Positions 1,273 through 36,492 of a stretch of 64,000 nucleotides of DNA are shown here, piece by piece (within the stretch, counting starts at the first letter, position 1; each line of letters starts with the position of its first letter). Below the pieces are notes generated by a model. It was not told the origin of the DNA. It saw only the letters and a list, made by a program, of their open reading frames with translations, and made no database searches. The stretch lies in sequence record NC_071015.1; one strand, 5' to 3'. Both the position numbers and the translations under genes were made by a program.

Positions 1273-1345
1273 CGGTTTAAATCTATATGGGCAAAAGAAT
1301 CGTTTGGATTGATTAATCTCTAAAGTTTCACCTTAAGGTACATAT

Positions 1346-5212: not shown

Positions 5213-5574
5213 TATCGAGCGCCTTGGATATCATCCGGATTCCAAGAGACCTCACTACTCGGTTGTTTTTCAGGTTTGATGATCGTCCCGCCAGGATTGT
5301 TGATCGTTTTTATCAGCTCACCCAACAGCTGAAGTTTAAGCTTTTCGGTAGCGTGCTGACTTTCCCACAGTTCTCGACGCTTAGCTTCAACCATCTCTAC
5401 CACCTGCTCACGGTTGTAGCCCGCAACCACGAACCCTTCGGTGTGATAAATTTTGGTCTTACCGCCTGCATTGCGTTCTATAGGTTTGACCATCAACGTA
5501 ATAGTGTTAACGTCAATCGTTGCAATGCGACCGTCATCAGTGGTAATTTCAATAAGGCTTGATACGTAATGCAT
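5212..5574 (-). CDS. FlbD/SwrD-like domain protein
   Basis: LIEITTDDGRIATIDVNTITLMV...TKIYHTEGFVVAGYNREQVVEMV; paralogous to both flanking genes. Confidence 0.5.
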   Translation of the reverse strand: MHYVSSLIEITTDDGRIATIDVNTITLMVKPIERNAGGKTKIYHTEGFVVAGYNREQVVEMVEAKRRELWESQHATEKLKLQLLGELIKTINNPGGTIIKPEKQPSSEVSWNPDDIQGAR

Positions 5575-9183: not shown

Positions 9184-9215
9184 GAGAGACTCTGGGGAAA
9201 CCCAGGGCTCTCTTT
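9184..9215 (+). terminator. Intrinsic terminator after nrdB
   Basis: GC stem CTGGG-GAAA-CCCAG extended by AGAG/CTCT, followed by T residues. Confidence 0.6.
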
Positions 9216-9260
9216 GAGATTTTATGCTTAGTGTTTAGGCGTTTACACAGAAGAGGATTT

Positions 9261-11429
9261 ATGGACAACGAATTTCGTCAGCTCGATTTATCGAACGCTG
9301 TCAAAGAGTGCTACGGGGTATTGAATGACGATATCCTAACTGTAGCCGCTAAAATTGTTAACCCACAAACCGGTCTTTCCATTCTCGATTTAAAGGTTAA
9401 CCCTATTTTTCATTCCGGCAACCATGTTCCCGTAGGGACTATTAAAGCCACCAATGATTTCTACGATGAACTCACCGGGTTCTATTGGTTTGATGTCAAA
9501 GTCAACCCGATCAATCGTAAAGCGCATTTTCGCTTTGAGACTACGGCTTCCGTAAATGGGCAAAGTGATTCGGTTGCCTTTGATCTGGATATCTCCGGAC
9601 AATCAAAAACAGAAACTAATAAAGTTGAGTTCATTGGACGCGACCTTTATTACAGCGTTTCTGCTAAACCAGGCCACAGCGTCTTCAAACACCCACTCGA
9701 AACAAAGGTAACTGCAAACCTTTCTGAGTTCCAACCCCGTTTCATGAATGACCAAAGTGTTGGGTATTTATGGAAATGTGAGGACTTTGTTGAAGGTAAA
9801 GAAATTTGTGCGATAGGTAATGTGATGGTTGATGGAGTGACAGAACTCTATCTCTTCCGTCATACTCTTACTCTTCCTAACCTGGTGGAGGCTACTGCCA
9901 CTCAAACGGACACTAACGTGCTGAATGTTAAAGTCACGTTAGACAAACCTTTCGGTGAGAGACCTTTGGTTAACGGAAGCGTGGGGTATACCGAAAACCC
10001 AGATTTTGGACGTTGGGTTATTAAAGGTGGGAAAAACCTGCAGGTTGATGGAAATCAGATTTCTTTTGACATTGGTATTTGGGATGTTAAAAAGAAAGGA
10101 CTAATCGATGTTGATCTTATTATCAACATTGGTGACGATGCGAACACCCCAGTCAACATCGGTATTCCTACTTCAGTGCAAGCATGGTCTGATGGCGAGA
10201 AAACCGTTACCGTCACTAAACTTACTCACAATGTGTTTAATGGGATAGAAACTTTAATCTGTCAGGTAAATTGGAAAAACAGTCAGGGTAAGGTTTGTGA
10301 CTTTACTGTTATTCCAGATGACCCTAATGTTAAAGTTACGGTCAAAGAAAACGTGTTCTTCTTAGATCGACCTGTCAGCTTAGACCGCAATCGTCGCAAC
10401 ACCTTTACCTTATCCGGTAAACTCGATCTGTCAGAATACGGCATTGCCAAAAAGACAACGTTCAGTGAATCGGTTAACATGGGTAGCGATTTCTTGCCCG
10501 TTAAAGTATCCGCAATTCAAGCTGCCATTATTGAAGATGCCGGATCCTTTATTGTCGCTCTGACCACCAATAACGGTTCACGTTTAACCGATGTTGTATT
10601 GAACAGCGTAACGGTGGACGACGGTCCGTTTGGGAAGTATATTCGTGAACAGCGTTATGATGCCGATACTGGGTATCTGCAATTCAAACTCGATGTTGCG
10701 CTGAAAGATCTTACTTACCCGGAAGTATTACTGAAGGCCAAGCTGCAGTTGGATGTCAAGTTTGATGACACCCCGGCCAGTGTGATTGTTCCGGTGCAAG
10801 TTAAAGCGACCGTAGACTATCAAATAAATGCGTCTTACATTGGAACCCGGTATGAAAGAGCCGGCGAAGGTTATCGTGGGATTGCTCAATGGCGTGTTGG
10901 GGACAATAACAACAGCGCCCCGGCTTCTGTGTCGATCATGGGCTTGAAGGTTAACGGGAAAACCACTGCCTTTACCAAGCGCTATAATCAAAGTACTCGC
11001 ATCCTGTCTGCTGAGTTTGATATCCCTGTCAAGTCAGGTCATATCCTACACCTGAATGCCACGATCTCGTCTCCGGGCGTCAATCACTTTGTGACGTTGC
11101 CAGATGTGTTGTTTACGTTCTACACGCCAGGTGCAGCAACAGTCGCTCGCCAGATGTTTAACCCGGACAAAACTCACCTGACTGTGCAATGGAACGTTCA
11201 AGGCTGGTCCAGTGAGATTCCGTCTGAAGTAACCCTGGGGGAATGGCAACCGTTAGGCGGTATCAGTACCAAAATGGTTTATGCCAACTACGATAACAAA
11301 CTCGGTCTTTTGACCTGTACCTTTGCATTGGAGAATCCTGAGTCGGATATCTTTGCCGCGAAGAACACCATCCGTATTACTCATGCTGATGGGAATATGT
11401 ATCCGTTGACGTTCAGTTACAAACTGTAA
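9261..11429 (+). CDS. Beta-sandwich repeat protein (~722 aa), probable virion structural protein
   Basis: Start re-called at ATG 9261 (GAGGA upstream); repeated YDxxTG-type motifs (YDELTGFYWFDV, YDADTGYLQFKL, YNQSTRILSAEF, YDNKLGLLTCTF), also present in the giant (YDNVTGFTYLTL). Confidence 0.75.
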   Translation: MDNEFRQLDLSNAVKECYGVLNDDILTVAAKIVNPQTGLSILDLKVNPIFHSGNHVPVGTIKATNDFYDELTGFYWFDVKVNPINRKAHFRFETTASVNGQSDSVAFDLDISGQSKTETNKVEFIGRDLYYSVSAKPGHSVFKHPLETKVTANLSEFQPRFMNDQSVGYLWKCEDFVEGKEICAIGNVMVDGVTELYLFRHTLTLPNLVEATATQTDTNVLNVKVTLDKPFGERPLVNGSVGYTENPDFGRWVIKGGKNLQVDGNQISFDIGIWDVKKKGLIDVDLIINIGDDANTPVNIGIPTSVQAWSDGEKTVTVTKLTHNVFNGIETLICQVNWKNSQGKVCDFTVIPDDPNVKVTVKENVFFLDRPVSLDRNRRNTFTLSGKLDLSEYGIAKKTTFSESVNMGSDFLPVKVSAIQAAIIEDAGSFIVALTTNNGSRLTDVVLNSVTVDDGPFGKYIREQRYDADTGYLQFKLDVALKDLTYPEVLLKAKLQLDVKFDDTPASVIVPVQVKATVDYQINASYIGTRYERAGEGYRGIAQWRVGDNNNSAPASVSIMGLKVNGKTTAFTKRYNQSTRILSAEFDIPVKSGHILHLNATISSPGVNHFVTLPDVLFTFYTPGAATVARQMFNPDKTHLTVQWNVQGWSSEIPSEVTLGEWQPLGGISTKMVYANYDNKLGLLTCTFALENPESDIFAAKNTIRITHADGNMYPLTFSYKL

Positions 11430-11434
11430 TCGAG

Positions 11435-11470
11435 AAGGACCCTGGGGAAACCCGGGCGTCCTTTATTTAT
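11435..11470 (+). terminator. Intrinsic terminator or attenuating hairpin
   Basis: AAGGAC...CCTGGG-GAAA-CCCGGG...GTCCTT then TATTTATT; same GAAA-loop core as 9184. Confidence 0.6.
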
Positions 11471-11545
11471 TATTGGTTCTCGAATTCTTTGCTTTAGTCG
11501 TAATCTACCTTAGTGCGTTGTTTCATTTACAGAGGAATCCTGCTC

Positions 11546-14500
11546 ATGGCAGAATTGATCAAAGTTAATAAAAAAGTTATTAACGACCCCCTCTACACTC
11601 CTGTGGTAAAGTTTCTGAAAGAACGCATTGCGTTTCTGGAAGCGAACGGTCCGCAAAGTGAGTTAGAGTTAGCAAGAGAACGTTATACAGGTATTGTGGC
11701 AGGTGATCTTGTTATTGAGAACCCTGTTGCTTTCTCTGACGGAGCAATTCGCGTTTGCTTCGTGTCGCGCAAAACCGGTTTTGCACGTGTTGACGTCGAC
11801 ATCACGCGTGTACAGATGAAAGAAATCCTGGATGACTTTCAAGTTCCCTTAGTGGTCATTAACGACCCGGATCACATGAAAGCCTGGGTAAAGGCCAACC
11901 CCACGGAATCTGCGTTGTTGTGGTTAGAAGATCGTCAGACTTACGGTGTCTTGCTGAGCCAGGAAGCTGCACGAACTCACGCCGGGGCAATGACCGCATT
12001 CGGTGAATTGTTCTTTGAAGAGTACACGTTAACTCGTGACTCGTTAACAGCCATTGACTATGAAACGCTGGAGTCAGGAACTGTTAAAGTCAGTGATGTG
12101 TCTTTTGGTGAAGCAACTTACCCGCTGTTCATTTATGAACTGGTGCTGGAAGAAGCTAACCTGCCAGAGATCACTTCCAATCTGCCTGCCACACTGACCA
12201 CTCGCCGTGGTGAAACGTTCAGCATTCCGAACACCTTCTGGTTTGCCGGTACGCAGGATATCACCCTTGAGATCGATCTGGTTCTCTCTACCGATTCGGG
12301 CTACACCATTCCGGCTCGCTCAAGTGATTTGCTGTCTCTGAACGGAGAAGCTATCTTTGGTTCTGCCACGGAAGATATGCAAGACCGTATTACCATCCGT
12401 GCCACGTACATGTGGAATGGACGTCCGGTCCGTAAAACGTTCCGTATCGCAGTCACCATTGAGAAAGATGAAGTCTCTGACCTGACGCTGGTTCCGGTTC
12501 CTGAAACGATTCAGGCAACCACAGGTGACACGCTGCAGGTTACCATCAGTGCGTTCTTTACTGAGACCCCAGTTACGATTTTGGTGCCGCCATCCGAGAT
12601 TGTGTCAAGCCGTAACTACGGTAAGCTCAATTACGTAAGCACCAACCCTGACGGTGGGATGGTGTACAGCGGGACAATCACCGGTGCACTCCCAGGCAAT
12701 AAAGAATCGGATACCGATTTGTTCAGCGGGAAGTTCTTGTATAACGGAGATGACGGTACGCCGTATTGGGCTACAGGGTATGTCAACATCGTTATTGTGA
12801 AACCGGAAGTCCAGCCAAAGTTCGAGGTGAAGAAATTTACCAGTGCAGTGGCAGGGTATAAAGGAGCAACCGGGACTATCGATGTCCAGGTCTTCTACGG
12901 TGAGAACCAGATCCCACTTTCTCAGCTGGCTGTTACCACCGGGGTAAAAGGTTCCAAAGGTCTGATTGAGTATAAAGCACTTCAGACTGACAAGATCGAA
13001 TATGAACTGATCGCGGACAGCGGAACTCCTGGAGTCCCGACTTCTGATGCATTCACTCAGTTCCTGATCTATGTTGATGACAAAGGGATCCGTCATGCTG
13101 CTCAGCCGGTCTTTAACGTCACGGTTAAGAAAGCCTCGGAAGTTAAGATCGTCCCTGTAGCACCGCAACCTCGTAATGTTAAACGGTATCAATACGGCAC
13201 TGCGACATTCCAGGTTCTGGTAAACGGAATCGACAAAACCAATACCATCACCAACCTGCGTAATAAAAACGCCAGTGATGAGTATGTGACGTTCCCGGTT
13301 GATTTCCCGAATCAGTGGCAGATTCTGAACACCAAAGCTGAGTCGTACACCCATGCCATGACGTTCCAATTCGATCTCGTCATCGATGGGGAAGCGCCGA
13401 AAACGTATGAGTTCAACCAGGAATTTGTGATCGAACCATGGACTCGTACCAGTGGACCAAACAGCGGAATCGTAATTGTTCCGGAAGTTGCGTCTATTTC
13501 GGGTAACAGTGACGAACCGGGGTCGTTTGCCTTTAAAGTGTTTGAAGGGGCAAAGGACATTACTGCGGATGCCAAAATTGTTACGGACCGTACCGTAGTT
13601 CCGAACAAGGTGACATTTAACAGCATCAACTACGACACCACTCGCCACATGTTTGTGGTCAGCTACTTCAAAGACAACGGAGTAGTGAGCAGCGGTAAAA
13701 TCTTTGCGGCGAAGAAGTCTGATGCGAATCCGACAGACGACACCGTAGGGTTGGTTGATATTGATGTGAATGTCAATCAGATTAAAATTCTGAAAGTGGT
13801 TGGGAAGATTGCGGGTACAGCTATCACGGTTGAAGAAACCGCTGATGTGGAATTGAATCTGGAGTTTGCTGGTACACGCTTGTCGTTGGATGATGCTAAT
13901 CTGACCTTTACCAAAGCGTTCGTTTCGCAGACCTCTATTCAGACGCGGAACAAAGATACCCTGACACTCGCTTCGCCGGACTGGAAGTTTGTAGGAAGAA
14001 CGTTTAATGAGGGCATGATTTATAAGGTCACTTATAAAGATCCCGCCGACGGTCAAGTTTACACTATTCAGCAGATTGGCTTCCCGATTGTCATTACTTA
14101 CCCACCAATGCGTCTGGAACAAACCACCGATACTATCGATGGGAAGATCTGGGACAAAGGTACGTTCCCATTGAAACTGATGGCGGGTAATCACGACTTT
14201 ACTGGAAGTGTGTATTCGGTCGAGCTGATCACTGCCAACAAGTACGTGGCGATTGCTGGATTTAACTGGAACATCTATTTCGCAGAAAGCGACGCGACCT
14301 CAACGATTGTTGGTTTGCGTATGCGTTGGGGCGTGGGCGAAACCGTTAACCAAACACTTTCTACCGATTTCCGATTCAATGTTGCAGCTTGGGACGGCAT
14401 CACATTTGCAACCACGGAAGTTACACCTGCAAATGGCATCAGTGTGGATTCTGGTGACACCGGTGAAATCACCGTTAAAATGGTATATAAAGGAAACGAC

Positions 14501-17500
14501 GCTACCCAAACGGCGACCTTTGACCAAGCGGGCTCTACGATTCCACGCACCTTTATTCTGGGTACGCCGTATTATGATCCTGATCGTGGGTTCGTGATTC
14601 CGTATACCACGACTAAAGGCGGTGACTACGATCTGAAGTTGAAGTTCAAAGCACCTACTCCGGGAACGGAAACTCTGACCGCCACTATTGCGACATCTGT
14701 TACCTGGCCGTACGATCTGAACATCGACACCAACGGTGCCAGCATTCGTGGGTTCTGGGAAGATGTGCTGGACTACCCTCTGGTCCTGAACTTTGCCGGA
14801 ACACCGGTTGCGTTAGATGACCCGTCGCTGAACCTGACCTTCACTAGTGGGACAGGTGAACCGATTACGCTGGAAGCGATTAAACAGCAAGCGTTGTCAG
14901 TTGCGTTAAATGAAGGCGGTACGTTAGGGACGAATTACAACTACACGGTTGATATCGGTCTCGAGTATCAGAATCAGGCTGACGGTCAGCTTTATAACAA
15001 AGCGCTGTCTATCCCAGCCACTATCCGTGTCTCTGCGGTAAAAGTGGGGGCGAACCCGTCTCAGACTGTGAAGGTCTATAGCCGTGGTGCAATTCCAACC
15101 ACCTTAGTAGATGAACGCGGTCGTATTGTTCCGATCACCAGTTATGCTCCTCGCGGAACCAATAACTACATTGCCTTTGTGTCACCGAAAAACTGGTACA
15201 TCACTAACGGCAGTTTGGCTGATCAGATTACGACAGCACTTCCGCTGACCCTGGGTTATGACATGGGTGGAGCGTCGTACACGTTGGATGTGGATGTTAA
15301 CTTCACTATCCTTAAGTTCGACGGGATCAAGTTGAAAGTGGAAACCGTCACCACAGAGCTGAAAGGCAAAGCGGGTGATATCGGAACACTGCAATTTGAT
15401 TTCACGTACCTGGGTGACCCAATTACCGGAATGACGTTGGATACCGCTAACAGCATTATCCCGCGTAACCTGGCAGTAGGGGATCTGACCGCAGACGGTG
15501 AACTTCCGTACACCTTACTGGGTCAAGCGGTTGATACCGTGAAGCTGGTCTTCCTGCGTCCTAATGGTGCGGTTCCGCCGGTTAACAATGTTGACTCAGT
15601 GACGCTGTCTATGGGTGTAACGTCTACGTCTTCGAACGAGCCGTTCTCTCTGACAACGTATGACACAGCCATTTCGCTGGACTGGGGCAAGAGTGATATT
15701 CTTAAGGTGACTCCACGTTACGGTCTTTACGACCTGCCAGCCAACACACCTGGTCTGACGTATACCTTAACTGAAGAAGCATCCAAGTCGGTTGCCATTA
15801 TCGGTACCCGAGCTAACGGAATCATTCTTCGTGCAACCCGCTCTAACGTACCGGGGTCTGTTGATGTTCGTCCTGAACACATTCTGGTAAGTTACAATGT
15901 TGGTGCGCCTGATCCGAAGACCGCTGAGATGTCCTTCAGTGCGACTATTTCCATGGGTAACCCTGACATTGGAAATAACGCTACGGTGCAACGTGCCATT
16001 TGGGCACTGGGAACGTTTACTCAACAGGTGAAGTTCAACGATGTCGTGTTGAACACCATTGATCACTTCGAAGTACTGAACGTGAACAAGTACGTTGAGA
16101 TGGTCAGCGACAAAGGGTATGAGATCATTGGGACGGAATTAACCACGTCTACCCAATCCATTCCGATGCGTGCGTACTATAAAGTTGATGAAACTGATAC
16201 CCTTCAGTATATCGATTTTACAGCAACGTTCCTGATTACTGGCTCGTCCAGTGTGCGCTTTAAAGTAACCCCGACTCCGTCCAAAATTGAAGGCGTGATT
16301 GAAGGTGATATCGTTATCGCTTTCCGTCCACTCTATAAGGATAAGTTGGTTGGTGGTGCTGCCACATTCAAACAGGAGCTGAGTACTCTTCCACCACAGG
16401 TGGTGATCAAATCCCATACTGTTTCTGGGAATGATCATCTTATTACCTTTACGGGTAAAGTGGGTGGAATTGGTGATGCTGAGATGGTCTTCTGGTCTCC
16501 GGTTGCAGGCGATAACCCGCCAGCCCGTGAAGTGTGGAAAGGCAAAATCGAAGCGCGTATTCTCGATGGGGAACTGGGCTTAGAAGTCGGTAACCGTGAC
16601 AACCTGTTAACCGGTAAGTCAGGTGACACAGGGGTGTACAAACTGGAGCTGCTCTTTGGTGCGTTACCAATCAGCATGAGCGATGAGATTACCCGTGGTA
16701 ATCTGACCATTGCAGTTGAAACAGGTGCGCCAACGTCATTGAACGCGAACGTGCTTAAAGCAACAGCATGGCACGATGACACGTTTGATTTCTCGCTGAA
16801 AGGTCCGGTCTCTCCAGGTAAAACGGTTAGTGTCTCAGATTACATCAACGTCACGTATAAGTTTGGTGGTAAGACGTACAACCGTCGTGTTGAAATCCCA
16901 ATGTCGTACACCAGTTTGGCTGCAACCGTCGGTGCGGTAAACTACGGCACAGTGTCAATGTGGAAAACAGGTGCGCTTAACTTCCCAGGGATTACCTGTG
17001 ATGGCGTAACCATGCCAACACCACAATCTGCTTCTGATGTTACTGATCCGGCTCAGGGTTATGTAAAAATCACAGCCAAAAACTACGAGATCATCAACGC
17101 AGACCCAGTGCAAGTCTCTAAAGGTTTGTTGCTGAAGTATGTGGGGATTTATCGTAACTGGACGTACGAAGCAGAGGGCAATGCGAGCTGGACAATCAGT
17201 GCCTGGAATGGTTACACGTTTGAGCCTAGTTTCATTACGTCTTGGACAGGGTACTTGGGTTATCCAACTACTCAATACCTGACGGTGAAACTGAAGGGTC
17301 AAGTGTTCACTCCGACCCAAGGGTATGATTACCTTGATCGGACACTGACGGATCTGAAAGGATTGTTCACGTTAGAGTTTACCGGTAACACGGCGTTCTC
17401 TGGTGGAAGCTATGCAGTTTATAAACTGACGCCGTTGAAAGTGAGTAAAGACACAGTTCGCTTAGCGTTCCGTGTGTATAACTCTCCGGTCCCAGGTGTG

Positions 17501-20500: not shown

Positions 20501-22279
20501 GCGTTTAAAACAGAACTGACGAGTGCCAAACAGAAAACTCAGACCGTTAACTTCTGGGCGCAGCCAACAGGTTCTGACCCAGCAACGCGCGCGTACTTCC
20601 CAGTTGAAGTGACGCAGAACTCTAACTACCAGTTCCCGACGGTTACCGATCTCCATCAAGTCTCTACTAACCTTAACGAATCCGGCACCCTGCCGTTCAA
20701 GTTGGTGGATCCAGACAGTGGAGCAGACGTTACCAGTGGAGCGAGTATCACAGCCGTCGCTGCTAACAGTTATATTGATGTTGTTAATGGCAAATGGCAT
20801 GTGAACAATGCCCGTACGGGTGACACTACAGTTACAGTAACGTTGACGTATAGCGTGCTGTATCGCGGTAATACCTTGTTGATAAACCAGGATGTTGAAT
20901 TCTTGATCAAAGGGTTCACTGGGGCACCAACAATAAGTAATGTCACTGAAGTCACAGGCAATGTGTGGGAGAAAGGAACTCAACTTCCGTTCACTATCAA
21001 CATCAACGGTGCTCCGGTGCCGGCAGCATGGATCACAGCCAACAGCGGTGTGTCTCCAAACAGCCGTGTAACGGTAGGTCCAGCGGTGGGCGCGTGGAAG
21101 ATTATTGCTGGGGATCTGACTCAGGCACTGCGTGAAACCGTTACGTATACCGTGACAGTTACGGTAGGAAGCTTGAGCTGGACAGTAACACAAGCTGTGG
21201 TATTCAATATCAACAAGTACGACGGTATTGAATTTAAAGCAGTTCTGCTGAATGCAGGTAACGGTAACGGTGACTTCATCTTCTCACCACGTATCCAAAA
21301 CGGTGGGCAGCCGTCTTCCTACTTCGCCGGGTATTACCGTGGGGAAAGGGAGCAGAATGTATTTAACGCAGGAATTATTAACCGCGGTCCATTCAACAAC
21401 TATGTGGATGGGATTAACCAACCGCCTAACGTTGTCTACATTATGAGTCCGTCATATCCTGACATTGGCCGTTACAACTTTACCGTTGCAATTGGTCGTG
21501 CGGACGGCGTGGGTGAAGGTAAAAACCGTGCAACCATTACGGTTCCGGCGATCATCACTAGCGGCGGGTATGTTCCTGTGTACGGTGGTGGGAACTTCGA
21601 AGGGAAACTCGGTGACGTGTTTGATGTTGGCTGTGCGATCGCTTACGGTAACGTTTGGGCTGACCTTACTAACCCGGTTCATGCGATTACATTTAGTCCG
21701 GCAAACGTGGTTGAAATGGTTCCTGGTTCACTGACTGCAAAAGGATTTAAAGTTCGCTTTAAAGCCGATGTTGATGTGAAGAAAGTTACAACCATAACGG
21801 CGAGCGCAACACGTCCTTCACCGGCATACGTCGGGTCCGTTACCCTGAGTATGACGCAAAACCCAACCCGTGAACCGGTTTCAGGTTCTGCAACAGCTCC
21901 GGTTATGAAAGTGGGAGAGACTGGTAAAATACACATTACCGGATCTTATGGCTCTCAAGGACTGGCAGGTAATGTCACGTTCGTTAGTGCTGAAAGCGAT
22001 GCCAAAGGACTGTATACATTTAACTCAATGTCGACAAATCCAGACGGCTCTCTTGATGTTAACGTCACTGCCCTTGCGGTAGGAAAAGATAACGTCACGA
22101 TTCGCTTGAAAGTCAACGGCGCAACCGGTACAGTGGAAGGCAAGGACATCTTGACCTTAACAGTTCCTGCGGAAGTAATTCCGGCGCAAATGAATACCCC
22201 TGACGATTTCGATTCTGAGATTGAAGGTGTATCTGGCGATACAGTAACTGTCACTCAGTACATGACTCTGCCAAACTAA
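11546..22279 (+). CDS. Giant Ig-like (beta-sandwich) repeat protein, ~3,577 aa; probable virion fibre or appendage
   Basis: Single uninterrupted ORF; start re-called at MAELIK (AGAGGA upstream); T/V/G-rich; about 10 recurrences of W-x-x-G-x-(L)PF...NxYV...W-x-I...F-x-I-x-x-(W/Y/F)DG. Confidence 0.88.
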   Translation: MAELIKVNKKVINDPLYTPVVKFLKERIAFLEANGPQSELELARERYTGIVAGDLVIENPVAFSDGAIRVCFVSRKTGFARVDVDITRVQMKEILDDFQVPLVVINDPDHMKAWVKANPTESALLWLEDRQTYGVLLSQEAARTHAGAMTAFGELFFEEYTLTRDSLTAIDYETLESGTVKVSDVSFGEATYPLFIYELVLEEANLPEITSNLPATLTTRRGETFSIPNTFWFAGTQDITLEIDLVLSTDSGYTIPARSSDLLSLNGEAIFGSATEDMQDRITIRATYMWNGRPVRKTFRIAVTIEKDEVSDLTLVPVPETIQATTGDTLQVTISAFFTETPVTILVPPSEIVSSRNYGKLNYVSTNPDGGMVYSGTITGALPGNKESDTDLFSGKFLYNGDDGTPYWATGYVNIVIVKPEVQPKFEVKKFTSAVAGYKGATGTIDVQVFYGENQIPLSQLAVTTGVKGSKGLIEYKALQTDKIEYELIADSGTPGVPTSDAFTQFLIYVDDKGIRHAAQPVFNVTVKKASEVKIVPVAPQPRNVKRYQYGTATFQVLVNGIDKTNTITNLRNKNASDEYVTFPVDFPNQWQILNTKAESYTHAMTFQFDLVIDGEAPKTYEFNQEFVIEPWTRTSGPNSGIVIVPEVASISGNSDEPGSFAFKVFEGAKDITADAKIVTDRTVVPNKVTFNSINYDTTRHMFVVSYFKDNGVVSSGKIFAAKKSDANPTDDTVGLVDIDVNVNQIKILKVVGKIAGTAITVEETADVELNLEFAGTRLSLDDANLTFTKAFVSQTSIQTRNKDTLTLASPDWKFVGRTFNEGMIYKVTYKDPADGQVYTIQQIGFPIVITYPPMRLEQTTDTIDGKIWDKGTFPLKLMAGNHDFTGSVYSVELITANKYVAIAGFNWNIYFAESDATSTIVGLRMRWGVGETVNQTLSTDFRFNVAAWDGITFATTEVTPANGISVDSGDTGEITVKMVYKGNDATQTATFDQAGSTIPRTFILGTPYYDPDRGFVIPYTTTKGGDYDLKLKFKAPTPGTETLTATIATSVTWPYDLNIDTNGASIRGFWEDVLDYPLVLNFAGTPVALDDPSLNLTFTSGTGEPITLEAIKQQALSVALNEGGTLGTNYNYTVDIGLEYQNQADGQLYNKALSIPATIRVSAVKVGANPSQTVKVYSRGAIPTTLVDERGRIVPITSYAPRGTNNYIAFVSPKNWYITNGSLADQITTALPLTLGYDMGGASYTLDVDVNFTILKFDGIKLKVETVTTELKGKAGDIGTLQFDFTYLGDPITGMTLDTANSIIPRNLAVGDLTADGELPYTLLGQAVDTVKLVFLRPNGAVPPVNNVDSVTLSMGVTSTSSNEPFSLTTYDTAISLDWGKSDILKVTPRYGLYDLPANTPGLTYTLTEEASKSVAIIGTRANGIILRATRSNVPGSVDVRPEHILVSYNVGAPDPKTAEMSFSATISMGNPDIGNNATVQRAIWALGTFTQQVKFNDVVLNTIDHFEVLNVNKYVEMVSDKGYEIIGTELTTSTQSIPMRAYYKVDETDTLQYIDFTATFLITGSSSVRFKVTPTPSKIEGVIEGDIVIAFRPLYKDKLVGGAATFKQELSTLPPQVVIKSHTVSGNDHLITFTGKVGGIGDAEMVFWSPVAGDNPPAREVWKGKIEARILDGELGLEVGNRDNLLTGKSGDTGVYKLELLFGALPISMSDEITRGNLTIAVETGAPTSLNANVLKATAWHDDTFDFSLKGPVSPGKTVSVSDYINVTYKFGGKTYNRRVEIPMSYTSLAATVGAVNYGTVSMWKTGALNFPGITCDGVTMPTPQSASDVTDPAQGYVKITAKNYEIINADPVQVSKGLLLKYVGIYRNWTYEAEGNASWTISAWNGYTFEPSFITSWTGYLGYPTTQYLTVKLKGQVFTPTQGYDYLDRTLTDLKGLFTLEFTGNTAFSGGSYAVYKLTPLKVSKDTVRLAFRVYNSPVPGVEKVDYTYVDLNFECKAKTLSTTSVTTTIGGNGDAITVPLALAITGSTGTQNVSVATNSPDLTITLPNEDVFKIVSRTTNGLGIEITAPLSKRSGSDVVNMTLTYKDPLGVDVTSVIPYTVNYRLPQDYPAVDLLPPFYVGNWKSAPLWSHGAFTNWFKVRGGQAANSADVTAQSDIINVTGPWVIPSRDLPEVGDRWWVIDGAEMSALIPHVYTFKAPFRGGFVNDVTVTVTLESASRNGADTPFVVGAPVASQRWPGNANTEIEVPFNIKWRGYKYGEAIFRADLSTTASAGAFSSAFEVVGQRYDNVTGFTYLTLKVLKDVTSNVTFVFDHKDAGSTPVAGKTEASAVYVFSPVNVVPVTPAPTTTMWKYIRLNQLFKIMDGTTDVTAQATLLSIDNPLAVIYQATNASSPAFSFQDHNANPGGTIPLTFTIQLGVANQSRVITYTINVNLAAFDGKEFVAGAPNPTQVYLALGASTDVTVSALDFRSNISALATDKSIVTAAKFDAANPNLQYVRWGFTSSPLALLVTYKSLNLFRGKVKTPIDYIGAGSTDYPVGTLDKNFLYLEQDIVVYEEKLYPYPAGYVVPPLTGEFGKQIVVPIQFTMGNDIVENLLATNVAGLTWTVPLDNGIVAKPGSGFVSSATGIMLNVTYDNRGADLTMTVPVTFTYNAGYRGRAVNTSVTVDVPITIKGTNTGDVTTVINATNPSVIAWQTGNLPFYIQHNGVTVATASYKSVDIKANPYVRKPETNPGNFTRAWEVYFGETTQTVAPVEFTVVFNDGVKDVTVTYTSTFTIAAYDGKEFVMTLRSPSTFNNGIVGTPNSSPIFQIWGKYRNTQLTTDDLTNKYSVWDKGFDLPGFLRITNRAAGQTVGGGGAGQYLNVTCLAGPTDMPVNVRGEVLFGKKDKENDPNAIENVDFVRVPINSYVYISNKFYPINWTKEINGVFGTGQTPTYPLNISFRQGITAVNNASISTYGIDATDFMNIVVTGTSSSTAYALAFKTELTSAKQKTQTVNFWAQPTGSDPATRAYFPVEVTQNSNYQFPTVTDLHQVSTNLNESGTLPFKLVDPDSGADVTSGASITAVAANSYIDVVNGKWHVNNARTGDTTVTVTLTYSVLYRGNTLLINQDVEFLIKGFTGAPTISNVTEVTGNVWEKGTQLPFTININGAPVPAAWITANSGVSPNSRVTVGPAVGAWKIIAGDLTQALRETVTYTVTVTVGSLSWTVTQAVVFNINKYDGIEFKAVLLNAGNGNGDFIFSPRIQNGGQPSSYFAGYYRGEREQNVFNAGIINRGPFNNYVDGINQPPNVVYIMSPSYPDIGRYNFTVAIGRADGVGEGKNRATITVPAIITSGGYVPVYGGGNFEGKLGDVFDVGCAIAYGNVWADLTNPVHAITFSPANVVEMVPGSLTAKGFKVRFKADVDVKKVTTITASATRPSPAYVGSVTLSMTQNPTREPVSGSATAPVMKVGETGKIHITGSYGSQGLAGNVTFVSAESDAKGLYTFNSMSTNPDGSLDVNVTALAVGKDNVTIRLKVNGATGTVEGKDILTLTVPAEVIPAQMNTPDDFDSEIEGVSGDTVTVTQYMTLPN

Positions 22280-22310
22280 TTCGTAATCGACACAAGAGAA
22301 ACATTACCAC

Positions 22311-25300
22311 ATGGCTGAACTGAATCAACAGTTGAGCGTAAATGGTATTGCGTTGAGTAACAAAGACCCTAATTTGGTCATTAAACTGGACGACCACCCG
22401 GTCGTCCAGATCTCATCTATTCAGGAAAGCACGATCACCTATGCTTTTCTGTCGGATGTAGATACGGCCCAGGTGTATAACCTCAACCTCACCTTTACGT
22501 ATAAAGGCACGTTAACTAAAGTAGTCCCGTTAACGTTTAAACATAACCCGAAACCAGTTCCGCTGGTTATCACCGATGCTCCGATTACCGCAGCAATGTG
22601 GGAACGGGGTGATGCTATTCCATTCACAGCTCAGCTGGATGGGGTCGATGTGACCAGTCAATTGTCCTCAATTGCTTTGGTTCCTAACGACTATATTAAA
22701 GCTGACCCAACTCCGGGTAGCGATAAGAAACGCTGGTCAGTGGAAAGTGCAGAACCTACCCCTGCCGATGCCCTGACAAAATTCAATTTCAACTTTACCT
22801 ATGAAGGTAAAGTCAAAGCTCTCAGTGCAGAAGGTACCTTTAAGTTACCGGCTTGGGATGGCTTGATGATGTGGGTTACCCCAACCACAGAAAACGATCC
22901 GCTCTTTAGTAACATTCGTGTGAAAGTTGGGTCTTCGGTTACGGTAAACGTAATGCCGAAATTCCGTGGCGGAAATGCGTACGATAATTCTGCTTCATAT
23001 ATGAGTGTCGATCACAATGACACCAATGACGGAATGGTCGAGTTCTCTGACGGAACCGGGCACTGGTCTATTGGCCGACCATTGACAGTGAAAGGACTGA
23101 AGGTCGGAACACACAAAGTCAAACTGGCACTGGCTTCAAGTGTAACGTACGGTTATCCTGCCGAAGATGTTGGTTCCACCATGACCTATTGGGAACCGAC
23201 AGTCGAAGTCTATGACGACGTATTGGCTGCTTCGTCTACCGATACTGAAGTTTCAGGTGCTAAAGGTGATGATGTTACCTTTAACCTGGCTGTTGACTGG
23301 AACGGCGCTCCGATCGATACAAACGCCGCTGGCGTGACGTTGACCTTAGACCGTGACGATGTCATGACTGTTAAGTCACGCACCGCTAACAGCGTTACAG
23401 CGACGCTCATTAAGGATGTTGAATACACCCGTGTTATTCCGGTCACTGTGAACGTTGCATACCAGGGTAAAACCACAAGTGTGGTAATGAACGTCAAAGT
23501 GATCAATGAAGTCTTAACAGTCACGATCGATCCTGAAAACACCATTGGTGGAACAAACGACACCTTCACCATCAAACCAACGATTGTGTATAATGGTGTA
23601 ACTCAGAAAGTGAATGATCCTGAGCTTACCCTTGTCGTGACACCAGACACCATGCTTCAAGTGGTCGAAACCACTGAAGACAGTATCACCATTAAAGTGA
23701 CCAATGACGATATTGAAGCAACAGAGTTTATTGCTCAGCTTATGGTGAGTAAAGGTTCGTTGCAGGCAATCGGTCCGTGGATGCACAAATACACGGTTCG
23801 TCCGTCACTGGTGATGCGCTCAGTCAGTGGGTTGATTAAAGACTCCGGCCCGGCTCCGTTTAGCTTCACGATTGATGGTCCGGCAGTTGAACCAACATCG
23901 GTTAGCGCAACGTTAAGCGAAAACGATTACGTTACGGTTGACAGTAGTGGGGCATGGACGATCATCAAAGCTGAAGATACAGCAACTGAGATCACTCCAA
24001 CGTACACCATCACTATCGAATACGATAGCGTAACTTATACCTATGTTAAAGAAGCCACTTTCAACATCGGTCCATTGGGTTCTACCGTAACAGCCACTCC
24101 GGTTGTGAAAACCTCTGACATGGTTCTGAACAAGGAATCTCAAGTAAGCTTTACCCTGACTCAACAGTTAGCCGGTTCTGCTGTTAGCTTGACTCCGCAG
24201 TTTGAAAACATGACCATTGAGGGTGAAGCAACGTATGTGGATGTTCAACCGCACCCGGACAACGCAAACGAATATGTCGTTACTGTTAAAGGTACGGGCA
24301 AAGTCGGAGCGTATAAACTGAAAGGTCGTTTCCGCAATGTGATTGATGGAACACCAGAAGCCGGTGTGAGCTATCCGTTCTCGGTTGACTTTACTGCTGC
24401 GAAACTGGCCAGTTCAACGGTCACTATGTCTGCGGTAGGCGGGACAGTGCTGACTCCGGTACAACAGAACACCTTGACGGTTGCTCTGAAATACGGTTCA
24501 GGTAACTCTGTAGTGGGCGCAACCCCACGTGATGTTACTATCGTTGCTGTTCCTAATTCAGATGCTATTCTGGCAGGATTTGAAACGACGCTGACCCCGG
24601 TAGACGGTCAACCTGGTTCTTACACCTTGAGTGTGGACGTGGGTCATAAAGCCGGTTCGATCCGTGTGAATCTGGTTGTGGTCATTGACGGTGCGCAGTA
24701 CGTCGTAGATAACGCCCTGGTTTACACTACACCGGGTGCTGATGTTCTTGCTACCCCGATTGTCAGTGAGTTTAACGCTACTGATGATACAACCTCTGAA
24801 CTTGAATTTAGCCTGGCACAAAGTCGTCTGGATGTCCCATCCTACAACTTTACCGGGGCAAGCTTCAAAGACGTGGTGGGCATCGGTGAGATCAAATCTG
24901 TTAGCGCACCAACTGTAGGTAATGAAGGCACCTTCTTTATTACTGTAACCGGTAACGGTACAGCAGGCAGCGGAACGATTGGCGGGACAGTAGTGGATGT
25001 GGACGGTAACGAATTTGCATTTGACTTTGATGTCACAGGGGTTATTCCAAGTGATGACTTTGCCATTCGCGTTACACCGTTAACCACTGAACTTACTCCG
25101 GCATCGTCTAACCCGATTCTGTTCGTGTTGAAAGATCAGTACGGTACGCCAATCACGGATGCGGCCGAAGTGTCCATGGATATTGTTGAAAACCCTAACT
25201 ACAGAAATGTATTGGCAGGTTACAGCAATGTACTCACCAACATGAATGACACGAACCCAGGTCAATACCGTCTGGGAATGAACTTGGGTGAAACGGCGGG

Positions 25301-26060
25301 TACGTTTACCATCTCCTTAACTGTTGCAGTTCCAGGTAAAACTGAAAGCTACACGTTACCGGATATGGTCTTCACGAATCCAGGTTCTCCGATTAAGACA
25401 GCGTTGTCTCCAAACACCATTGATGTGGGTGCAGGTAAGACAAGTGTTGTAACGCTGACACTGACTCGGGATAAGTATCTGGTTCCTGATGCACCAATGG
25501 AAGGCATCTTCCACGTGGTTTCAACTACCGGTCCAGTCACTGCGCTGACACCATCACTTGTTCAGAACTCCAACGGCACTATCGAGTTGACGTTCACAAG
25601 CGACGGTACACAGGGTGAGATCGAAGTTAACGCTGAGTTCGCACCAGTGGTGAATGATATTACGTGGGCTGCTGTACCGTTCACGTTTAAACTCAGCACT
25701 GCGGTACCAAGCGAACCTGTGGTGACGGAACCTACAACCGAGATGTCTTTACAGCTTTGGGAACAAAAACCCATTAGCTTTAACGTCATGGCCGGGGATA
25801 CGGATCTCACTGCTGATGCAAGCGTAAGCTTTGCCGGTGAAGCAACCGACTATCTGGAATTTGTTTCGATCAGTGACGGTGTATGGGGCTTTAAAGCCAT
25901 TAAAGCCGATTCTGTGGAAGACACTGTAATTGCAACCAAGGTAAACGTCACTGTGAGCTTTGAAGATAACGATTACACGCTTCCTATTGATATCAATGTC
26001 ACGGTTCTCGCTAATACAGGGGACATTCCGAGCAATCGATTCAATATCGAAATCCTGTAA
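22311..26060 (+). CDS. Ig-like repeat protein (1,249 aa) with invasin/intimin-like (Big_1-type) domains
   Basis: Same repeat type as the giant (AMWERGDAIPF...FKLPAWDG); LKDQYGTPI motif; duplicated two-domain unit; ends NTGDIPSNRFNIEIL. Confidence 0.85.
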   Translation: MAELNQQLSVNGIALSNKDPNLVIKLDDHPVVQISSIQESTITYAFLSDVDTAQVYNLNLTFTYKGTLTKVVPLTFKHNPKPVPLVITDAPITAAMWERGDAIPFTAQLDGVDVTSQLSSIALVPNDYIKADPTPGSDKKRWSVESAEPTPADALTKFNFNFTYEGKVKALSAEGTFKLPAWDGLMMWVTPTTENDPLFSNIRVKVGSSVTVNVMPKFRGGNAYDNSASYMSVDHNDTNDGMVEFSDGTGHWSIGRPLTVKGLKVGTHKVKLALASSVTYGYPAEDVGSTMTYWEPTVEVYDDVLAASSTDTEVSGAKGDDVTFNLAVDWNGAPIDTNAAGVTLTLDRDDVMTVKSRTANSVTATLIKDVEYTRVIPVTVNVAYQGKTTSVVMNVKVINEVLTVTIDPENTIGGTNDTFTIKPTIVYNGVTQKVNDPELTLVVTPDTMLQVVETTEDSITIKVTNDDIEATEFIAQLMVSKGSLQAIGPWMHKYTVRPSLVMRSVSGLIKDSGPAPFSFTIDGPAVEPTSVSATLSENDYVTVDSSGAWTIIKAEDTATEITPTYTITIEYDSVTYTYVKEATFNIGPLGSTVTATPVVKTSDMVLNKESQVSFTLTQQLAGSAVSLTPQFENMTIEGEATYVDVQPHPDNANEYVVTVKGTGKVGAYKLKGRFRNVIDGTPEAGVSYPFSVDFTAAKLASSTVTMSAVGGTVLTPVQQNTLTVALKYGSGNSVVGATPRDVTIVAVPNSDAILAGFETTLTPVDGQPGSYTLSVDVGHKAGSIRVNLVVVIDGAQYVVDNALVYTTPGADVLATPIVSEFNATDDTTSELEFSLAQSRLDVPSYNFTGASFKDVVGIGEIKSVSAPTVGNEGTFFITVTGNGTAGSGTIGGTVVDVDGNEFAFDFDVTGVIPSDDFAIRVTPLTTELTPASSNPILFVLKDQYGTPITDAAEVSMDIVENPNYRNVLAGYSNVLTNMNDTNPGQYRLGMNLGETAGTFTISLTVAVPGKTESYTLPDMVFTNPGSPIKTALSPNTIDVGAGKTSVVTLTLTRDKYLVPDAPMEGIFHVVSTTGPVTALTPSLVQNSNGTIELTFTSDGTQGEIEVNAEFAPVVNDITWAAVPFTFKLSTAVPSEPVVTEPTTEMSLQLWEQKPISFNVMAGDTDLTADASVSFAGEATDYLEFVSISDGVWGFKAIKADSVEDTVIATKVNVTVSFEDNDYTLPIDINVTVLANTGDIPSNRFNIEIL

Positions 26061-26064
26061 ATCT

Positions 26065-26090
26065 GAGGGGTTCTTCGGGACCCCTTCTTA
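26065..26090 (+). terminator. Hairpin with UUCG loop between fibre genes
   Basis: GAGGGGTTC-TTCG-GGACCCCTT followed by CTT. Confidence 0.55.
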
Positions 26091-26108
26091 AAGAGGGAAT
26101 TGTAACAA

Positions 26109-26798
26109 ATGGCGGATAAAGATATTGTCCTTAGCGTTAACGACATCAGCTCCATTCAAATCAAGCCTACGTTTGAAGGTGTTGCTGTAGCGTTAGCTAA
26201 AATTAGTGTTGATAATGATGCGTCTGACCTTAAAGGTCTGATTCAGATCAACAGCTTTGTCCCAGGTCCTGAAGGAATCGTTAACGTTCCGATTAAAGGT
26301 CTGGCAGAAGGTACTGGTGAAGCGACTGTGGTCTTTAAGTACGCAGATGCCGATCCCAGCAAAGCGGATGTTGAAGGGTGGGGTAAATCCACCAAGACCC
26401 TTTCGCTGACAATCAATGCAGCAGCAGCCCTGGCCCGTCTGATTGACGTCTCTACACCGCTGACCATGGATCTGTGGGCAAGTCAGCCGCTGACCTTTAA
26501 AGTGGTTAAAGGCGAAGGGGAAGATGAGAACGATATCACTCCTTCTGTTGACAGTGTCACCGTTACGCCAGCGTCTATCGACGGTAAGTTTGAATTCACC
26601 GCGGACGTTGAAGGCGGAGCGTACAGCTTCAAGTCTATCCAGTCTTCTACCACTGAAGTGGTTACCGCAACTGCGAAACTGATTGTTGCCGGCACTCACG
26701 ACGGCGTGGTTTACAGCCTGGAAGCTGACGTGGTACTGAACACTAACATTAACGATGGTTCTATTCCGACCAATCGTTTTAACGTTGAAGTCCAGTAA
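26109..26798 (+). CDS. Two-domain Ig-like protein (229 aa), paralogue of the giant and of the 1,249-aa protein
   Basis: SDLKGLIQINS...PEGIVNVPIKGLAEG matches the giant's SDAKGLYTFNS...PDGSLDVNVTALAVG; C-terminus NDGSIPTNRFNVEVQ matches the 1,249-aa C-terminus. Confidence 0.85.
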   Translation: MADKDIVLSVNDISSIQIKPTFEGVAVALAKISVDNDASDLKGLIQINSFVPGPEGIVNVPIKGLAEGTGEATVVFKYADADPSKADVEGWGKSTKTLSLTINAAAALARLIDVSTPLTMDLWASQPLTFKVVKGEGEDENDITPSVDSVTVTPASIDGKFEFTADVEGGAYSFKSIQSSTTEVVTATAKLIVAGTHDGVVYSLEADVVLNTNINDGSIPTNRFNVEVQ

Positions 26799-26800
26799 CC

Positions 26801-26859
26801 AAAAAAATAAAGCATAATTAAGAGAGTCTACCCCTCGGGGTAGACTCTCTGTATGTTTG
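26801..26859. terminator. Bidirectional intrinsic terminator between convergent genes
   Basis: 14-bp inverted repeat AGAGAGTCTACCCC/GGGGTAGACTCTCT (26821-26850); left flank AAAAAAATAAAGCATA identical to 1949-1964. Confidence 0.82.
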
Positions 26860-36490: not shown

Positions 36491-36492
36491 CC

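Follow-up and report, generated by a model that had tools for sequence, protein, structure and literature searches.

Our analysis of the first 64,000 bases of the genome of the jumbo phage Kosakonia phage Kc263 (MZ348422.1/NC_071015.1, bases 1-64000; this entire stretch is the window below) identified three adjacent gene products, g20, g21 and g22, and a related protein, g04, which we judge to have an even chance of forming a long, flexible, non-enzymatic adhesin filament of the bead-string type on the virion. The case for a virion filament is built on the beta fold of the proteins, their gene fusions, a fibre-like mode of evolution, a conserved head domain, the lack of export signals and the sustained investment of the phage in these genes. 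We infer the virion location, the attachment site, the stoichiometry, the contact between g20 and g21 and the adhesive function. An earlier reading made from the letters alone (the sequence-only reading) had placed the phage in Chimalliviridae and described four co-oriented plus-strand genes amid mostly minus-strand ones, and both points are borne out. The coding sequences are g19 (9261..11429, 722 aa), g20 (11546..22279, 3577 aa in an intact frame), g21 (22311..26060, 1249 aa) and g22 (26109..26798, 229 aa), and g04 lies on the same strand at 1346..1948 (200 aa). The locus takes up 6.9% of the genome in Kc263 and over 10% in pEt-SU, and g20 is the largest gene of Kc263. It contains no tRNAs and, according to the Kc263 annotation, lies apart from the structural gene clusters, with genes of nucleotide metabolism and small genes without assignment as its neighbours. 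A check of synteny across Chimalliviridae, proposed earlier, found the locus beside nrdB in OBP, N1M2, AH04 and pEt-SU, an arrangement that holds across at least five genera.

The composition of the proteins is rich in T, V and G, as had been remarked (g20: T 11.4, V 9.9 and G 8.4%; g21: T 12.7 and V 12.0%), and their recurrent unit is a module of ~115 aa that we term the WDG module. The strict motif [WYF]DG has five occurrences in g20 and one in g21, and is missing from g22; an HMM seeded with these six copies and iterated recovered the remaining ones, giving a census of 10 copies in g20, three in g21 and one in g22, equal to the repeat counts of the sequence-only reading (about 10, three and one). 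The g20 array occupies 13169..21304 on the plus strand (aa 542-3253), most of it in super-repeats, and both the HMM and alignments space its modules at 308-345 aa; each super-repeat therefore accommodates three domains of ~100 aa. In g21 the modules start at aa 91, 504 and 1144. Since TRF found no DNA tandem repeats in the locus, the repeats exist at the protein level only. AF2 modelling covered g20 aa 1-540 and 860-1168. Residues 860-1168 are modelled as three domains of beta structure throughout (pLDDT 75.7), and Foldseek matched this model to protocadherin and desmoglein (E 1.7e-8). Three further beta-sandwich domains directly behind the head in the other model (12170..13129, plus strand, aa 209-528) matched cadherin, Ig, titin and S-layer arrays (E 7e-10). 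The best PDB structure matches, to cadherin, protocadherin, titin, S-layer and Ig arrays, reached a Foldseek probability of 1.00, and in BFVD the matches beyond the orthologues were Ig-bearing tail and fibre proteins, aligned through generic Ig-like domains. The two models and Foldseek thus agree with the beta-sandwich modules proposed earlier, and the modelled segments of g20 are predicted to be tandem Ig/cadherin-like beta-sandwiches of ~100 aa each, an assignment that speaks to structural class only.

The head domain of g20 (aa 1-205; 11546..12160, plus strand) has a predicted alpha/beta fold; the AF2 model m8a65f669c8aa, which covers aa 1-540 (pLDDT 86.9), places helices at residues 17-52, followed by mixed sheets. 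A fold search with this model returned hit lists dominated by its three Ig-like domains. The head is the best-conserved portion of g20, and g04 is a stand-alone version of it, with 36% identity to g20 aa 8-198 (blastp, E 4e-37); there are no other head domains in the Kc263 genome. The sequence-only reading had included this 200-aa protein as a paralogue of the module system: its relationship to the giant stands, but blastp shows it to copy the alpha/beta head and not an Ig-like module. Seven heads share 24 invariant residues, and the g04 orthologues OBP_226 and N1M2_179 are 63% identical. The 62 homologues of g04 all measure 195-203 aa, and in every relative examined the protein is separate and short. 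Neither g04 nor the head had a Pfam match (E<=10, seven heads) or a PDB sequence match (head profile), and the head displays no homology to any known virion component in PHROGs, Pfam or PDB, or to any solved virion.

At its other end g20 carries a connector domain (21887..22219, plus strand; aa 3448-3558), which is kept at the end of the AH04 and OBP giants and in blastp is similar to g22 aa 7-111. The next protein, g21, comprises an 88-aa N-module, the WDG modules and a C-terminal tip module, and in g22 a connector-like domain (aa 1-116) precedes a tip module (aa 117-229) similar to the C-terminus of g21; sequence comparison thus bears out the sharing of domains between locus members. In pETSU_133 and four other giants of ~5100 aa, the counterpart of g20 aa 3448-3558 is 3175-3287 and that of g21 aa 3-117, directly after the connector, is 3297-3413, i.e. 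in pEt-SU-type phages g20 and g21 are a single polypeptide. Further, the final 210 aa of the giant P0005 align with g22 over its full length (33.6% identity, E 2e-25). This fusion of g20 with g21, together with the occurrence of the g22 tip on other giants, makes the genes look like consecutive segments of one chain. The C-terminal 350 aa of g21 match the end of pETSU_132 from an Edwardsiella phage at 58.8% identity, the remainder of g21 being far more diverged, and a C-terminal motif of the form IP[ST]NRF is common to g22, g21, pETSU_132 and three giants.

Comparable trends mark the wider family. The 47 orthologues of g20, all from jumbo-phage contigs, are collinear with it and 3308-5283 aa long. 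Measured in windows, g20 shares 63-96% identity with its closest relative over aa 1-2000 and 31-47% over aa 2000-3000 and 3200-3400, and the matches to relatives are mosaic; with the g21 tip included, the proteins combine a conserved proximal with a variable, exchanged distal part, as a tail fibre does. The anchor-shaft-tip order of the sequence-only reading is supported by this gradient and by the fusions (g20 with g21 in the pEt-SU type, giant with tip in the P0005 type), except that g04 duplicates the anchor domain, not the shaft. Classical tail fibres are trimeric, and in T4 gp34-gp37 consecutive genes likewise encode consecutive segments, with a conserved proximal part and a variable, exchangeable distal tip; however, the Kc263 chain is predicted to consist of globular beads instead of a trimeric beta-helical shaft, and it matches no tail-fibre PHROG or Pfam family. 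The WDG modules occur in only 70 of 1.84 billion protein representatives, and across that set neither head nor modules are found outside these phage proteins: the giants lie in contigs of jumbo-phage size and the other module proteins have the architectures of phage proteins.

The product of g19 stands apart. This fast-evolving protein has homologues only in P0105 (57%), P0106 (45%) and AH04_198 (29%), and distant ones in N1M2_163 and OBP_208, and neither blastp nor hhalign (probability <3%) related it to the WDG module, the super-repeat or the head. The earlier proposal that one module family built all four genes consequently holds for three, g20, g21 and g22, g19 having no detectable similarity to them. 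As a separate observation, BFVD returned Ig-like arrays for the predicted OBP_208 structure. The rapid evolution of g19, and the fact that all the proteins are unannotated, might be taken to indicate a decaying or selfishly expanding repeat region without present function. We give this hardly any credence, as the frames of 3577 and 1249 codons are intact, the repeats are old and position-specific and recur in orthologues that are collinear and 32-63% identical, no repeat is present at the DNA level and the synteny spans at least five genera.

In searches with g19-g22 and g04, no Pfam family was reached at E<=0.01 and none of relevance at E<=10. The comparison with Big_1, Big_2 and invasin proposed by the sequence-only reading likewise gave no sequence match at E<=10 in any of the five, nor did the cadherin models; PHROGs returned 0 matches for all five proteins, and thus no tail-fibre PHROG, and no PDB sequence was retrieved with g21, the N-terminus of g20 or the WDG and head profiles. 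The literature searched, a set to which the OBP genome/proteome paper (PMC3264338) is external, contained no mention of OBP_203-209, OBP_226 or pETSU_133. The family being unannotated in Pfam, PHROGs and PDB and unmentioned in that literature, the locus appears to be undescribed, as had been surmised. The head and the WDG super-repeat each define a protein family that neither Pfam nor PHROGs contains. GenBank names g21 'attaching and effacing protein', a label we reject as unsupported because Pfam, PHROGs and PDB sequence searches find nothing for it; its removal rids the annotation of a misleading, virulence-like name.

That product name, and tandem beta-sandwich arrays of the size of giant bacterial adhesins, would suit adhesins of the intimin, invasin or RTX type that the phage expresses and the host exports to its surface. 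We consider this very improbable and already nearly refuted: Pfam detected no Big_1, Big_2, intimin, invasin, LysM, beta-barrel, C-terminal lectin-like receptor-binding, RTX, T1SS or secretion domain at E<=10, the proteins have neither a hydrophobic N-terminus or signal peptide nor any transmembrane segment (KD19 at most 1.55), and the modules have the narrow distribution described above. The lack of export signals led us to reject a secreted adhesin. In the Kc263 annotation tables there is no recognisable gene for a T1SS-type transporter, and no fibre chaperone was recognised. SiiE, LapA, MpIBP, the BIg arrays of the Bap type and cadherins are similarly strings of dozens of ~100-aa beta-sandwiches, but the Kc263 proteins lack their T1SS/RTX signals, Big or cadherin HMM matches and export signals, and are encoded by a lytic phage and confined to one phage clade.

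We propose instead a filament on the virion, in which the g20 head (~205 aa, alpha/beta) would dock the chain on the particle, possibly co-assembling with the head-only g04. The ~31 Ig/cadherin-like beta-sandwiches of g20 would form a shaft of roughly 110-140 nm, and its C-terminal connector would hold the N-module of g21, which would add ~12 beads. The variable 'tip' beta-sandwich found on g21 and g22 would end the chain as its binding end, with g22 as an alternative short distal piece or a cap. The rapidly evolving g19 may belong to the same system, to which sequence does not tie it. The whole filament, of ~150-190 nm, would make an initial encounter with the host surface more likely. In favor of a virion filament, microscopy of the Kc263 tail reported 'visible fibers' (PMC8402661); against it, the authors of N1M2 saw no tail fibres (PMC7058600). 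The literature searched gave no virion proteomics for Kc263 or its relatives, and the Kc263, N1M2 and ZPAH34 papers contain none.

The N1M2 micrographs could also reflect proteins that are made in infection but kept off the particle, either as an intracellular scaffold or tether or as filaments freed at lysis, where they would act as adhesives or decoys on debris, matrix or neighbouring cells. The location of the locus outside the structural gene clusters agrees with this, as does the OBP GenBank record, in which many genes are labelled 'putative virion structural protein' but OBP_203-209 and OBP_226 'hypothetical'. Additionally, an upstream element is shared with a replication-associated gene. 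The elements GAATCGTTTG (1297..1306, plus strand, 40 nt 5' of g04) and GAATTCTTTG (11482..11491, plus strand, 55 nt 5' of g20) have GAATNNTTTG in common, which is also conserved 5' of the OBP and N1M2 orthologues of both genes; it links g04 to g20, a point in favor of the proposed filament system. The total number of GAATNNTTTG copies in the genome is not above chance, but 5 of the 8 are placed 33-54 nt before a start codon, where 0.5 would be expected. As it also precedes the DNA-polymerase-associated SH3 gene, late timing is not established, and we rejected it as evidence for late or structural expression. A different element, GATTTTATG (9218..9226, plus strand), lies 35 nt 5' of g19; its 8-mer ATTTTATG is also found upstream of the major head protein gene, and 7 of the 15 genome copies of ATNTTATG precede start codons (0.9 expected). 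Scans for sigma-70 promoters fell below shuffle expectation. Terminator-like hairpins on the plus strand follow nrdB (9190..9207) and g19 (11441..11456), and a strong one with a 13-bp stem closes the locus (26821..26850); a further plus-strand hairpin with a TTCG loop, read from the sequence and absent from the terminator scan list, separates g21 and g22 (26067..26084). A role off the particle nevertheless seems unlikely to us. Appendages that contact the host typically combine a conserved N-terminal anchor with a variable distal region and a tip open to exchange, and the conservation of g04 as a separate head protein points to assembly at a particular site. No intracellular role is known for long Ig-bead arrays in bacteria, and long thin filaments would easily be sheared or missed in microscopy and CsCl preparations.

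A virion filament might also decorate the capsid, neck or tail sheath, in the manner of Hoc, whiskers or 'hairs', and not be borne by the baseplate. A separate set of baseplate or fibre genes is indeed present at 54368-67719 of the Kc263 genome, away from the locus, neck appendages are known in chimalliviruses (the whisker ring of phiKZ, the collar filaments of Goslar), and Ig-like domains are typical of decoration proteins according to Fraser et al. 2006 as cited in PMC5259590. Among the BFVD matches, moreover, is an Ig-bearing protein from Y3, a hairy phage. Set against this is a head with no detectable relative in any solved virion, and we regard such decoration as improbable. The hairy jumbo myoviruses CBB, Y3 and Atu_ph07 bear extra filamentous appendages whose genes are unassigned (PMC5259590, PMC13282480). 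Ig-bearing proteins of Y3 and Atu_ph07 are among the structural matches of the locus, but these phages belong to other lineages without sequence homology to it, and hairs are unreported for Kc263, OBP and N1M2. T4 Hoc and the Ig-like insertions of tail and fibre proteins (Fraser et al. 2006) are likewise exposed tandem beta-sandwiches, thought to provide weak accessory adhesion to cell-surface and mucus glycans. Known virion Ig-like proteins, however, have 1-4 domains that match Pfam, as against ~31 plus ~12 without a Pfam match in Kc263, and lack a dedicated head and a chain split or fused across genes.

Within Chimalliviridae itself the closest parallel to the proposed virion filament is the 'fiber cloud' of DUF7941 proteins (Goslar gp22/gp23 and paralogues, phiKZ gp126/gp127), whose DUF7941 module is proposed to drive filament assembly at the virion periphery (bioRxiv 10.64898/2026.04.21.720040). 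Both systems feature a clade-specific N-terminal module that is either stand-alone and short or heads longer proteins, the remainder of which resembles host-recognition domains. No sequence relation of DUF7941 to the g04/g20 head was found (Pfam, E<=10, with a library that possibly has no DUF7941 model). Further, length here would come from a single giant covalent chain of Ig-like beads, in contrast to the many small polymerised subunits of the DUF7941 system, and the Goslar proteins were located in the virion by mass spectrometry, whereas the Kc263 system is known from genes and models. Peripheral fibres were not resolved in the new phiKZ and Goslar structures. It is tempting, if still speculative, to suppose that the OBP-like chimalliviruses possess a class of virion appendage not described before, a filament of ~150-200 nm (longer in the pEt-SU type) built as one or two giant covalent chains with 40-50 Ig/cadherin-like beads. 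A novel alpha/beta head co-assembling with g04 would anchor it, gene fission, fusion and tip exchange would remake it, and it would be a functional parallel to the DUF7941 fibre cloud without being related to it. The locus bears on how chimalliviruses first find and recognise their hosts. If its products do form a filament on the virion, they would represent a second and independent way of capturing hosts at long range within Chimalliviridae, and a natural case in which the length and tip of a fibre are set by adding, splitting and fusing bead modules.

With 100% identity, the window corresponds to bases 1-64000 of the genome of Kosakonia phage Kc263 (MZ348422.1/NC_071015.1). This jumbo myovirus of Kosakonia cowanii has a genome of 253,740 bp, and its particle has a head of 96 nm and a tail of 175 nm "with visible fibers" (PMC8402661). 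The genus Branisovskavirus, to which it belongs, is currently classified in the Chimalliviridae, and the genome encodes a nuclear shell protein, a PhuZ tubulin and a GroEL-like chaperonin (Kc263 245436-246998, minus strand; L011:31436-32998 in our locus set), the last of which is also present in OBP (PMC7909554). Downstream of nrdB, in surroundings that are almost all minus-strand, come the four plus-strand genes of interest, which correspond to the annotated CDSs PQD71_gp019-022: g19 (9261-11429; 722 aa), g20 (11546-22279; 3577 aa), g21 (22311-26060; 1249 aa) and g22 (26109-26798; 229 aa). In GenBank g21 is named "attaching and effacing protein" and the other three "hypothetical protein". Terminator-like hairpins occur 3' of nrdB, g19, g21 (weaker) and g22 (strong). 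Two unannotated antisense ORFs inside g20 (12605-14194, minus strand, 529 aa; 20084-21193, minus strand, 369 aa) are probably by-products of T/V/G-rich codon usage on the sense strand and not genes. Many small ORFs (window 387-788, 5212-5574, 36197-36732; Kc263 161064-161309) have improbable product names, among them pentalenene synthase, ATP synthase epsilon chain, decaheme cytochrome c, photosystem II protein J and neurotoxin BmK X, which look like over-interpreted weak matches in the deposited annotation.

A composition count confirmed the T/V/G-rich character that the sequence-only reading had ascribed to these proteins. The literal [WYF]DG of their recurring ~115-aa β-sandwich unit, the WDG module, has only five occurrences in g20 and one in g21, and the six 120-aa segments carrying it were used to seed a module HMM. 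In its first pass, prior to retraining, this HMM recovered extra copies with domain E-values of 1e-12, 6e-11, 1e-7, 2e-7, 5e-4, 1e-3, 2e-3 and 5e-3, which lend them independent support. Once iterated, the census was stable, with modules at aa 542, 863, 1172, 1480, 1801, 2128, 2349, 2693, 3038 and 3135 of g20, aa 91, 504 and 1144 of g21, and aa 117 of g22, the same 10, 3 and 1 copies counted earlier from the sequence alone. WDG spacing in g20 is 308-345 aa, and since the intervening ~200-aa stretches are also related to one another, the repeat unit is a three-domain super-repeat (alignment A3). We found no DNA-level repeat in the locus, and as the module copies are only ~20-25% identical to each other the array is ancient. 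Within the Kc263 genome the WDG module is confined to g20, g21 and g22, and the head, an N-terminal α/β domain of g20 (aa 1-205), to g20 and the 200-aa protein g04 (1346-1948). Two elements of the initial picture had to be given up: 1) g19, thought to share the module family of its neighbors, has no detectable similarity to g20-g22 by blastp, and profile-profile probability is below 3%; 2) g04, thought to be an Ig-like paralog, matches the first 200 residues of g20 (36% identity, E 4e-37, blastp), a region that is not a β-sandwich.

The head family (alignment A5) has 24 positions that never vary among its stand-alone and fused copies, taken from three phages, and matched nothing in Pfam or the PDB. 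Its g04-type branch has 62 members, all of 195-203 aa and 46-85% identical to g04, on the same contigs as the giants; in OBP, OBP_209 is a third head-bearing protein. Using the first 540 residues of g20 as query we recovered 47 proteins of 3308-5283 aa, all lacking Pfam domains and encoded on jumbo-phage-sized contigs, with AH04_197, OBP_207 and pETSU_133 as the named giants. By tblastn the g20 N-terminus was found in 33 phage records, which comprise a group at ~50-55% identity (OBP, N1M2, pEt-SU, AH04, Yubaba/Sureiya, SXP01 and Survivor) and Aeromonas phages at ~30% identity, in which the protein is only ~1050 aa long. In Aeromonas phage PS1 a single ~1050-aa head-bearing protein (L014:9983-13132) and a g04-like protein (L014:878-1477) are each encoded by an isolated plus-strand gene with minus-strand neighbors; this reduced Aeromonas system may be a minimal or ancestral form. 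Homologs of g04 or the giant also occur on ~260-kb contigs of assemblies labeled as bacterial (P0109, E. coli F9Z84_06445, contig of 260,448 bp; P0025, Salmonella Saintpaul D5W64_12600, contig of 267,347 bp), which are presumably genomes of jumbo phages that accompanied the cultures.

The giants are collinear orthologs over their full length (63% identity across 3577 aa with P0002, the closest relative; 41% across aa 1-2389 with OBP_207), and individual repeats therefore hold conserved positions. In 100-residue windows g20 and P0002 share 63-96% identity up to ~aa 2000, 31-47% in aa 2000-3000 and 3200-3400, and rise again in the last 150 residues. A search of 1.84 billion protein representatives with the super-repeat profile matched only 70 proteins, with no cellular adhesin found among them, and those that were classified had the same architectures as the phage proteins.

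Synteny across relatives also held up, the order nrdB, variable protein(s), giant and one to four g21-like proteins being kept in AH04, OBP, N1M2 and pEt-SU, with a g04-like gene some kb upstream on the same strand. The number and size of the variable partners differ between phages: in OBP there are seven genes in the same orientation (OBP_209 to OBP_203), and pEt-SU encodes proteins of 1488, 5119 and 3124 aa. The g19 protein belongs to the variable upstream class and is related to AH04_198 and N1M2_163 and more distantly, via N1M2_163, to OBP_208. In Kc263 and AH04 the giant and the genes downstream of it are flanked by gaps of only 14-48 nt, as against an unannotated stretch of 624 nt between the giant N1M2_162 and N1M2_161 in N1M2 (L004:26129-26752).

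A census of 103 relatives revealed two kinds of N-terminus ahead of WDG arrays, namely the 540-aa head region (proteins of 846-5283 aa) and an 88-aa g21-like module (proteins of 396-3124 aa, first WDG module at ~aa 91). In the ~5100-aa giants (pETSU_133, which is P0038, and P0036, P0043, P0044 and P0028) residues 3175-3287 align with the C-terminal g20 domain (aa 3448-3558 of 3577), and ~10 residues further on residues 3297-3413 align with residues 3-117 of g21 (E 1e-14). In these phages g20 and a g21-like protein are one continuous polypeptide, the end of the first running into the start of the second. In its entirety, g22 similarly aligns with the last 210 residues of the giant P0005 (33.6% identity, E 2e-25), and IP[ST]NRF is a C-terminal signature found in g21, g22 and pETSU_132 as well as in three giants. 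Over its last 350 residues g21 shares 58.8% identity with the end of pETSU_132 of an Edwardsiella phage, far above the rest of g21, which indicates an exchange of the distal end. Such splits and joins of genes speak for g20, g21 and g22 being consecutive or alternative segments of one filament, in which the proximal position would fall to the head and the distal one to the tip module, the C-terminal unit of g21 and g22.

None of the five proteins (g19-g22 and g04) was recognized by Pfam (E<=0.01 and E<=10) or PHROGs, and PDB sequence searches returned no match. Two pieces of g20 were modeled with AlphaFold2. The super-repeat (aa 860-1168; nine paralogous units as alignment input) was modeled as all-β, with three domains joined by low-confidence linkers (mean pLDDT 75.7). 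The N-terminal 540 residues (18 orthologous giants as input; mean pLDDT 86.9) form an α/β domain at aa 9-205, in which two long helices (17-52) precede mixed sheets, and then three β-sandwiches at aa 209-306, 313-418 and 426-528. Foldseek matched both models to PDB structures with probability 1.00 and E-values of 1e-8 to 1e-10, the matches comprising protocadherin, desmoglein and cadherin ectodomains, titin Ig arrays, fucoidanase Ig-like modules and the S-layer proteins SbsC and EA1; TM-scores were low, as expected with differing inter-domain angles. Thus, the Ig-like β-sandwich proposal stands at the level of fold, while membership of the Big_1, Big_2, invasin or cadherin families finds no Pfam match. 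From the module spacing and the two models we estimate ~31 sandwich domains in g20 and ~12 in g21. An Ig or cadherin domain is ~4 nm long, and the extended lengths would be roughly 110-140 nm for g20 and ~45 nm for g21, a total comparable to the 175-nm tail. That the phage chaperonin might help such giant multi-domain proteins fold is pure conjecture.

The element GAATNNTTTG sits 40 nt before g04 and 55 nt before g20 and is kept ahead of their OBP and N1M2 orthologs. These are its only copies in the window, a count not in itself above chance; of the 8 copies in the whole genome, 5 are placed 33-54 nt ahead of a start codon (0.5 expected). The other genes it precedes are gp062, next to tail genes, gp095, which opens a run including virion structural proteins, and gp141, a DNA-polymerase-associated SH3 protein; for this reason we read it as evidence that g04 and g20 are co-regulated and reject it as a mark of late timing. 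An 8-mer, ATTTTATG, precedes both g19 and the major head protein gene. Of the 15 copies of ATNTTATG in the genome, 7 (0.9 expected) precede a start codon by 23-68 nt (window 9218-9226; Kc263 43482, 87166, 94322, 113314, 122004 and 229853), and g19 and the major head protein gene are among the seven genes concerned. This TATG-containing element is a candidate promoter class, with GAATNNTTTG as a candidate second class.

No signal peptide, transmembrane segment or secretion domain was found in the locus proteins, which makes a secreted intimin-like adhesin very unlikely and leaves the "attaching and effacing" name of g21 unsupported. What fits best is a virion-borne adhesive filament, given the conserved anchor with its dedicated paralog, the fixed-order conserved shaft, the variable distal region, the exchangeable tip, the split and fused genes, the restriction to one clade and the large genomic investment. 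However, in the OBP GenBank record the label "putative virion structural protein" is given to many genes but to none of OBP_203-209 or OBP_226, fibers were not seen on N1M2 by its authors, and the literature searched, the OBP paper lying outside it, contained no virion proteomics placing the locus proteins in the particle. We therefore give the virion-borne filament an even chance; the appendage proposed in the sequence-only reading is plausible and supported by the fusions, with its location on the particle in doubt. Roles outside the virion are rather improbable, as is, to a like degree, a variant of the filament model with a decoration or whisker on the capsid, neck or sheath and not the baseplate; the remaining alternatives are close to excluded.

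A DUF7941 "fiber cloud" was recently proposed for Goslar and phiKZ (bioRxiv 10.64898/2026.04.21.720040). If the filament model holds for Kc263, the filament would play a role akin to that of this cloud and of the Ig-domain decorations seen in other phages, from which it differs in family and construction. Elsewhere in Kc263 a 1689-aa protein (54368-59437) with DUF285 (BspA-type leucine-rich repeat) units (E 1.6e-130), a 1243-aa tail protein (59481-63212) and a 252-aa tail protein (Kc263 66961-67719; L008:2961-3719), all on the minus strand, have in common an N-terminal phrog_2163 "virion structural protein" module. These constitute a second, separate family, in which this module is followed by variable host-recognition domains, and may be the Kc263 counterpart of the DUF7941 proteins. 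The initial observation on the g19-g22 locus, sharpened and shorn of g19 and of an Ig-like g04, was thus largely right, and the system is plausibly a phage Ig-like adhesive appendage with two unannotated protein families.
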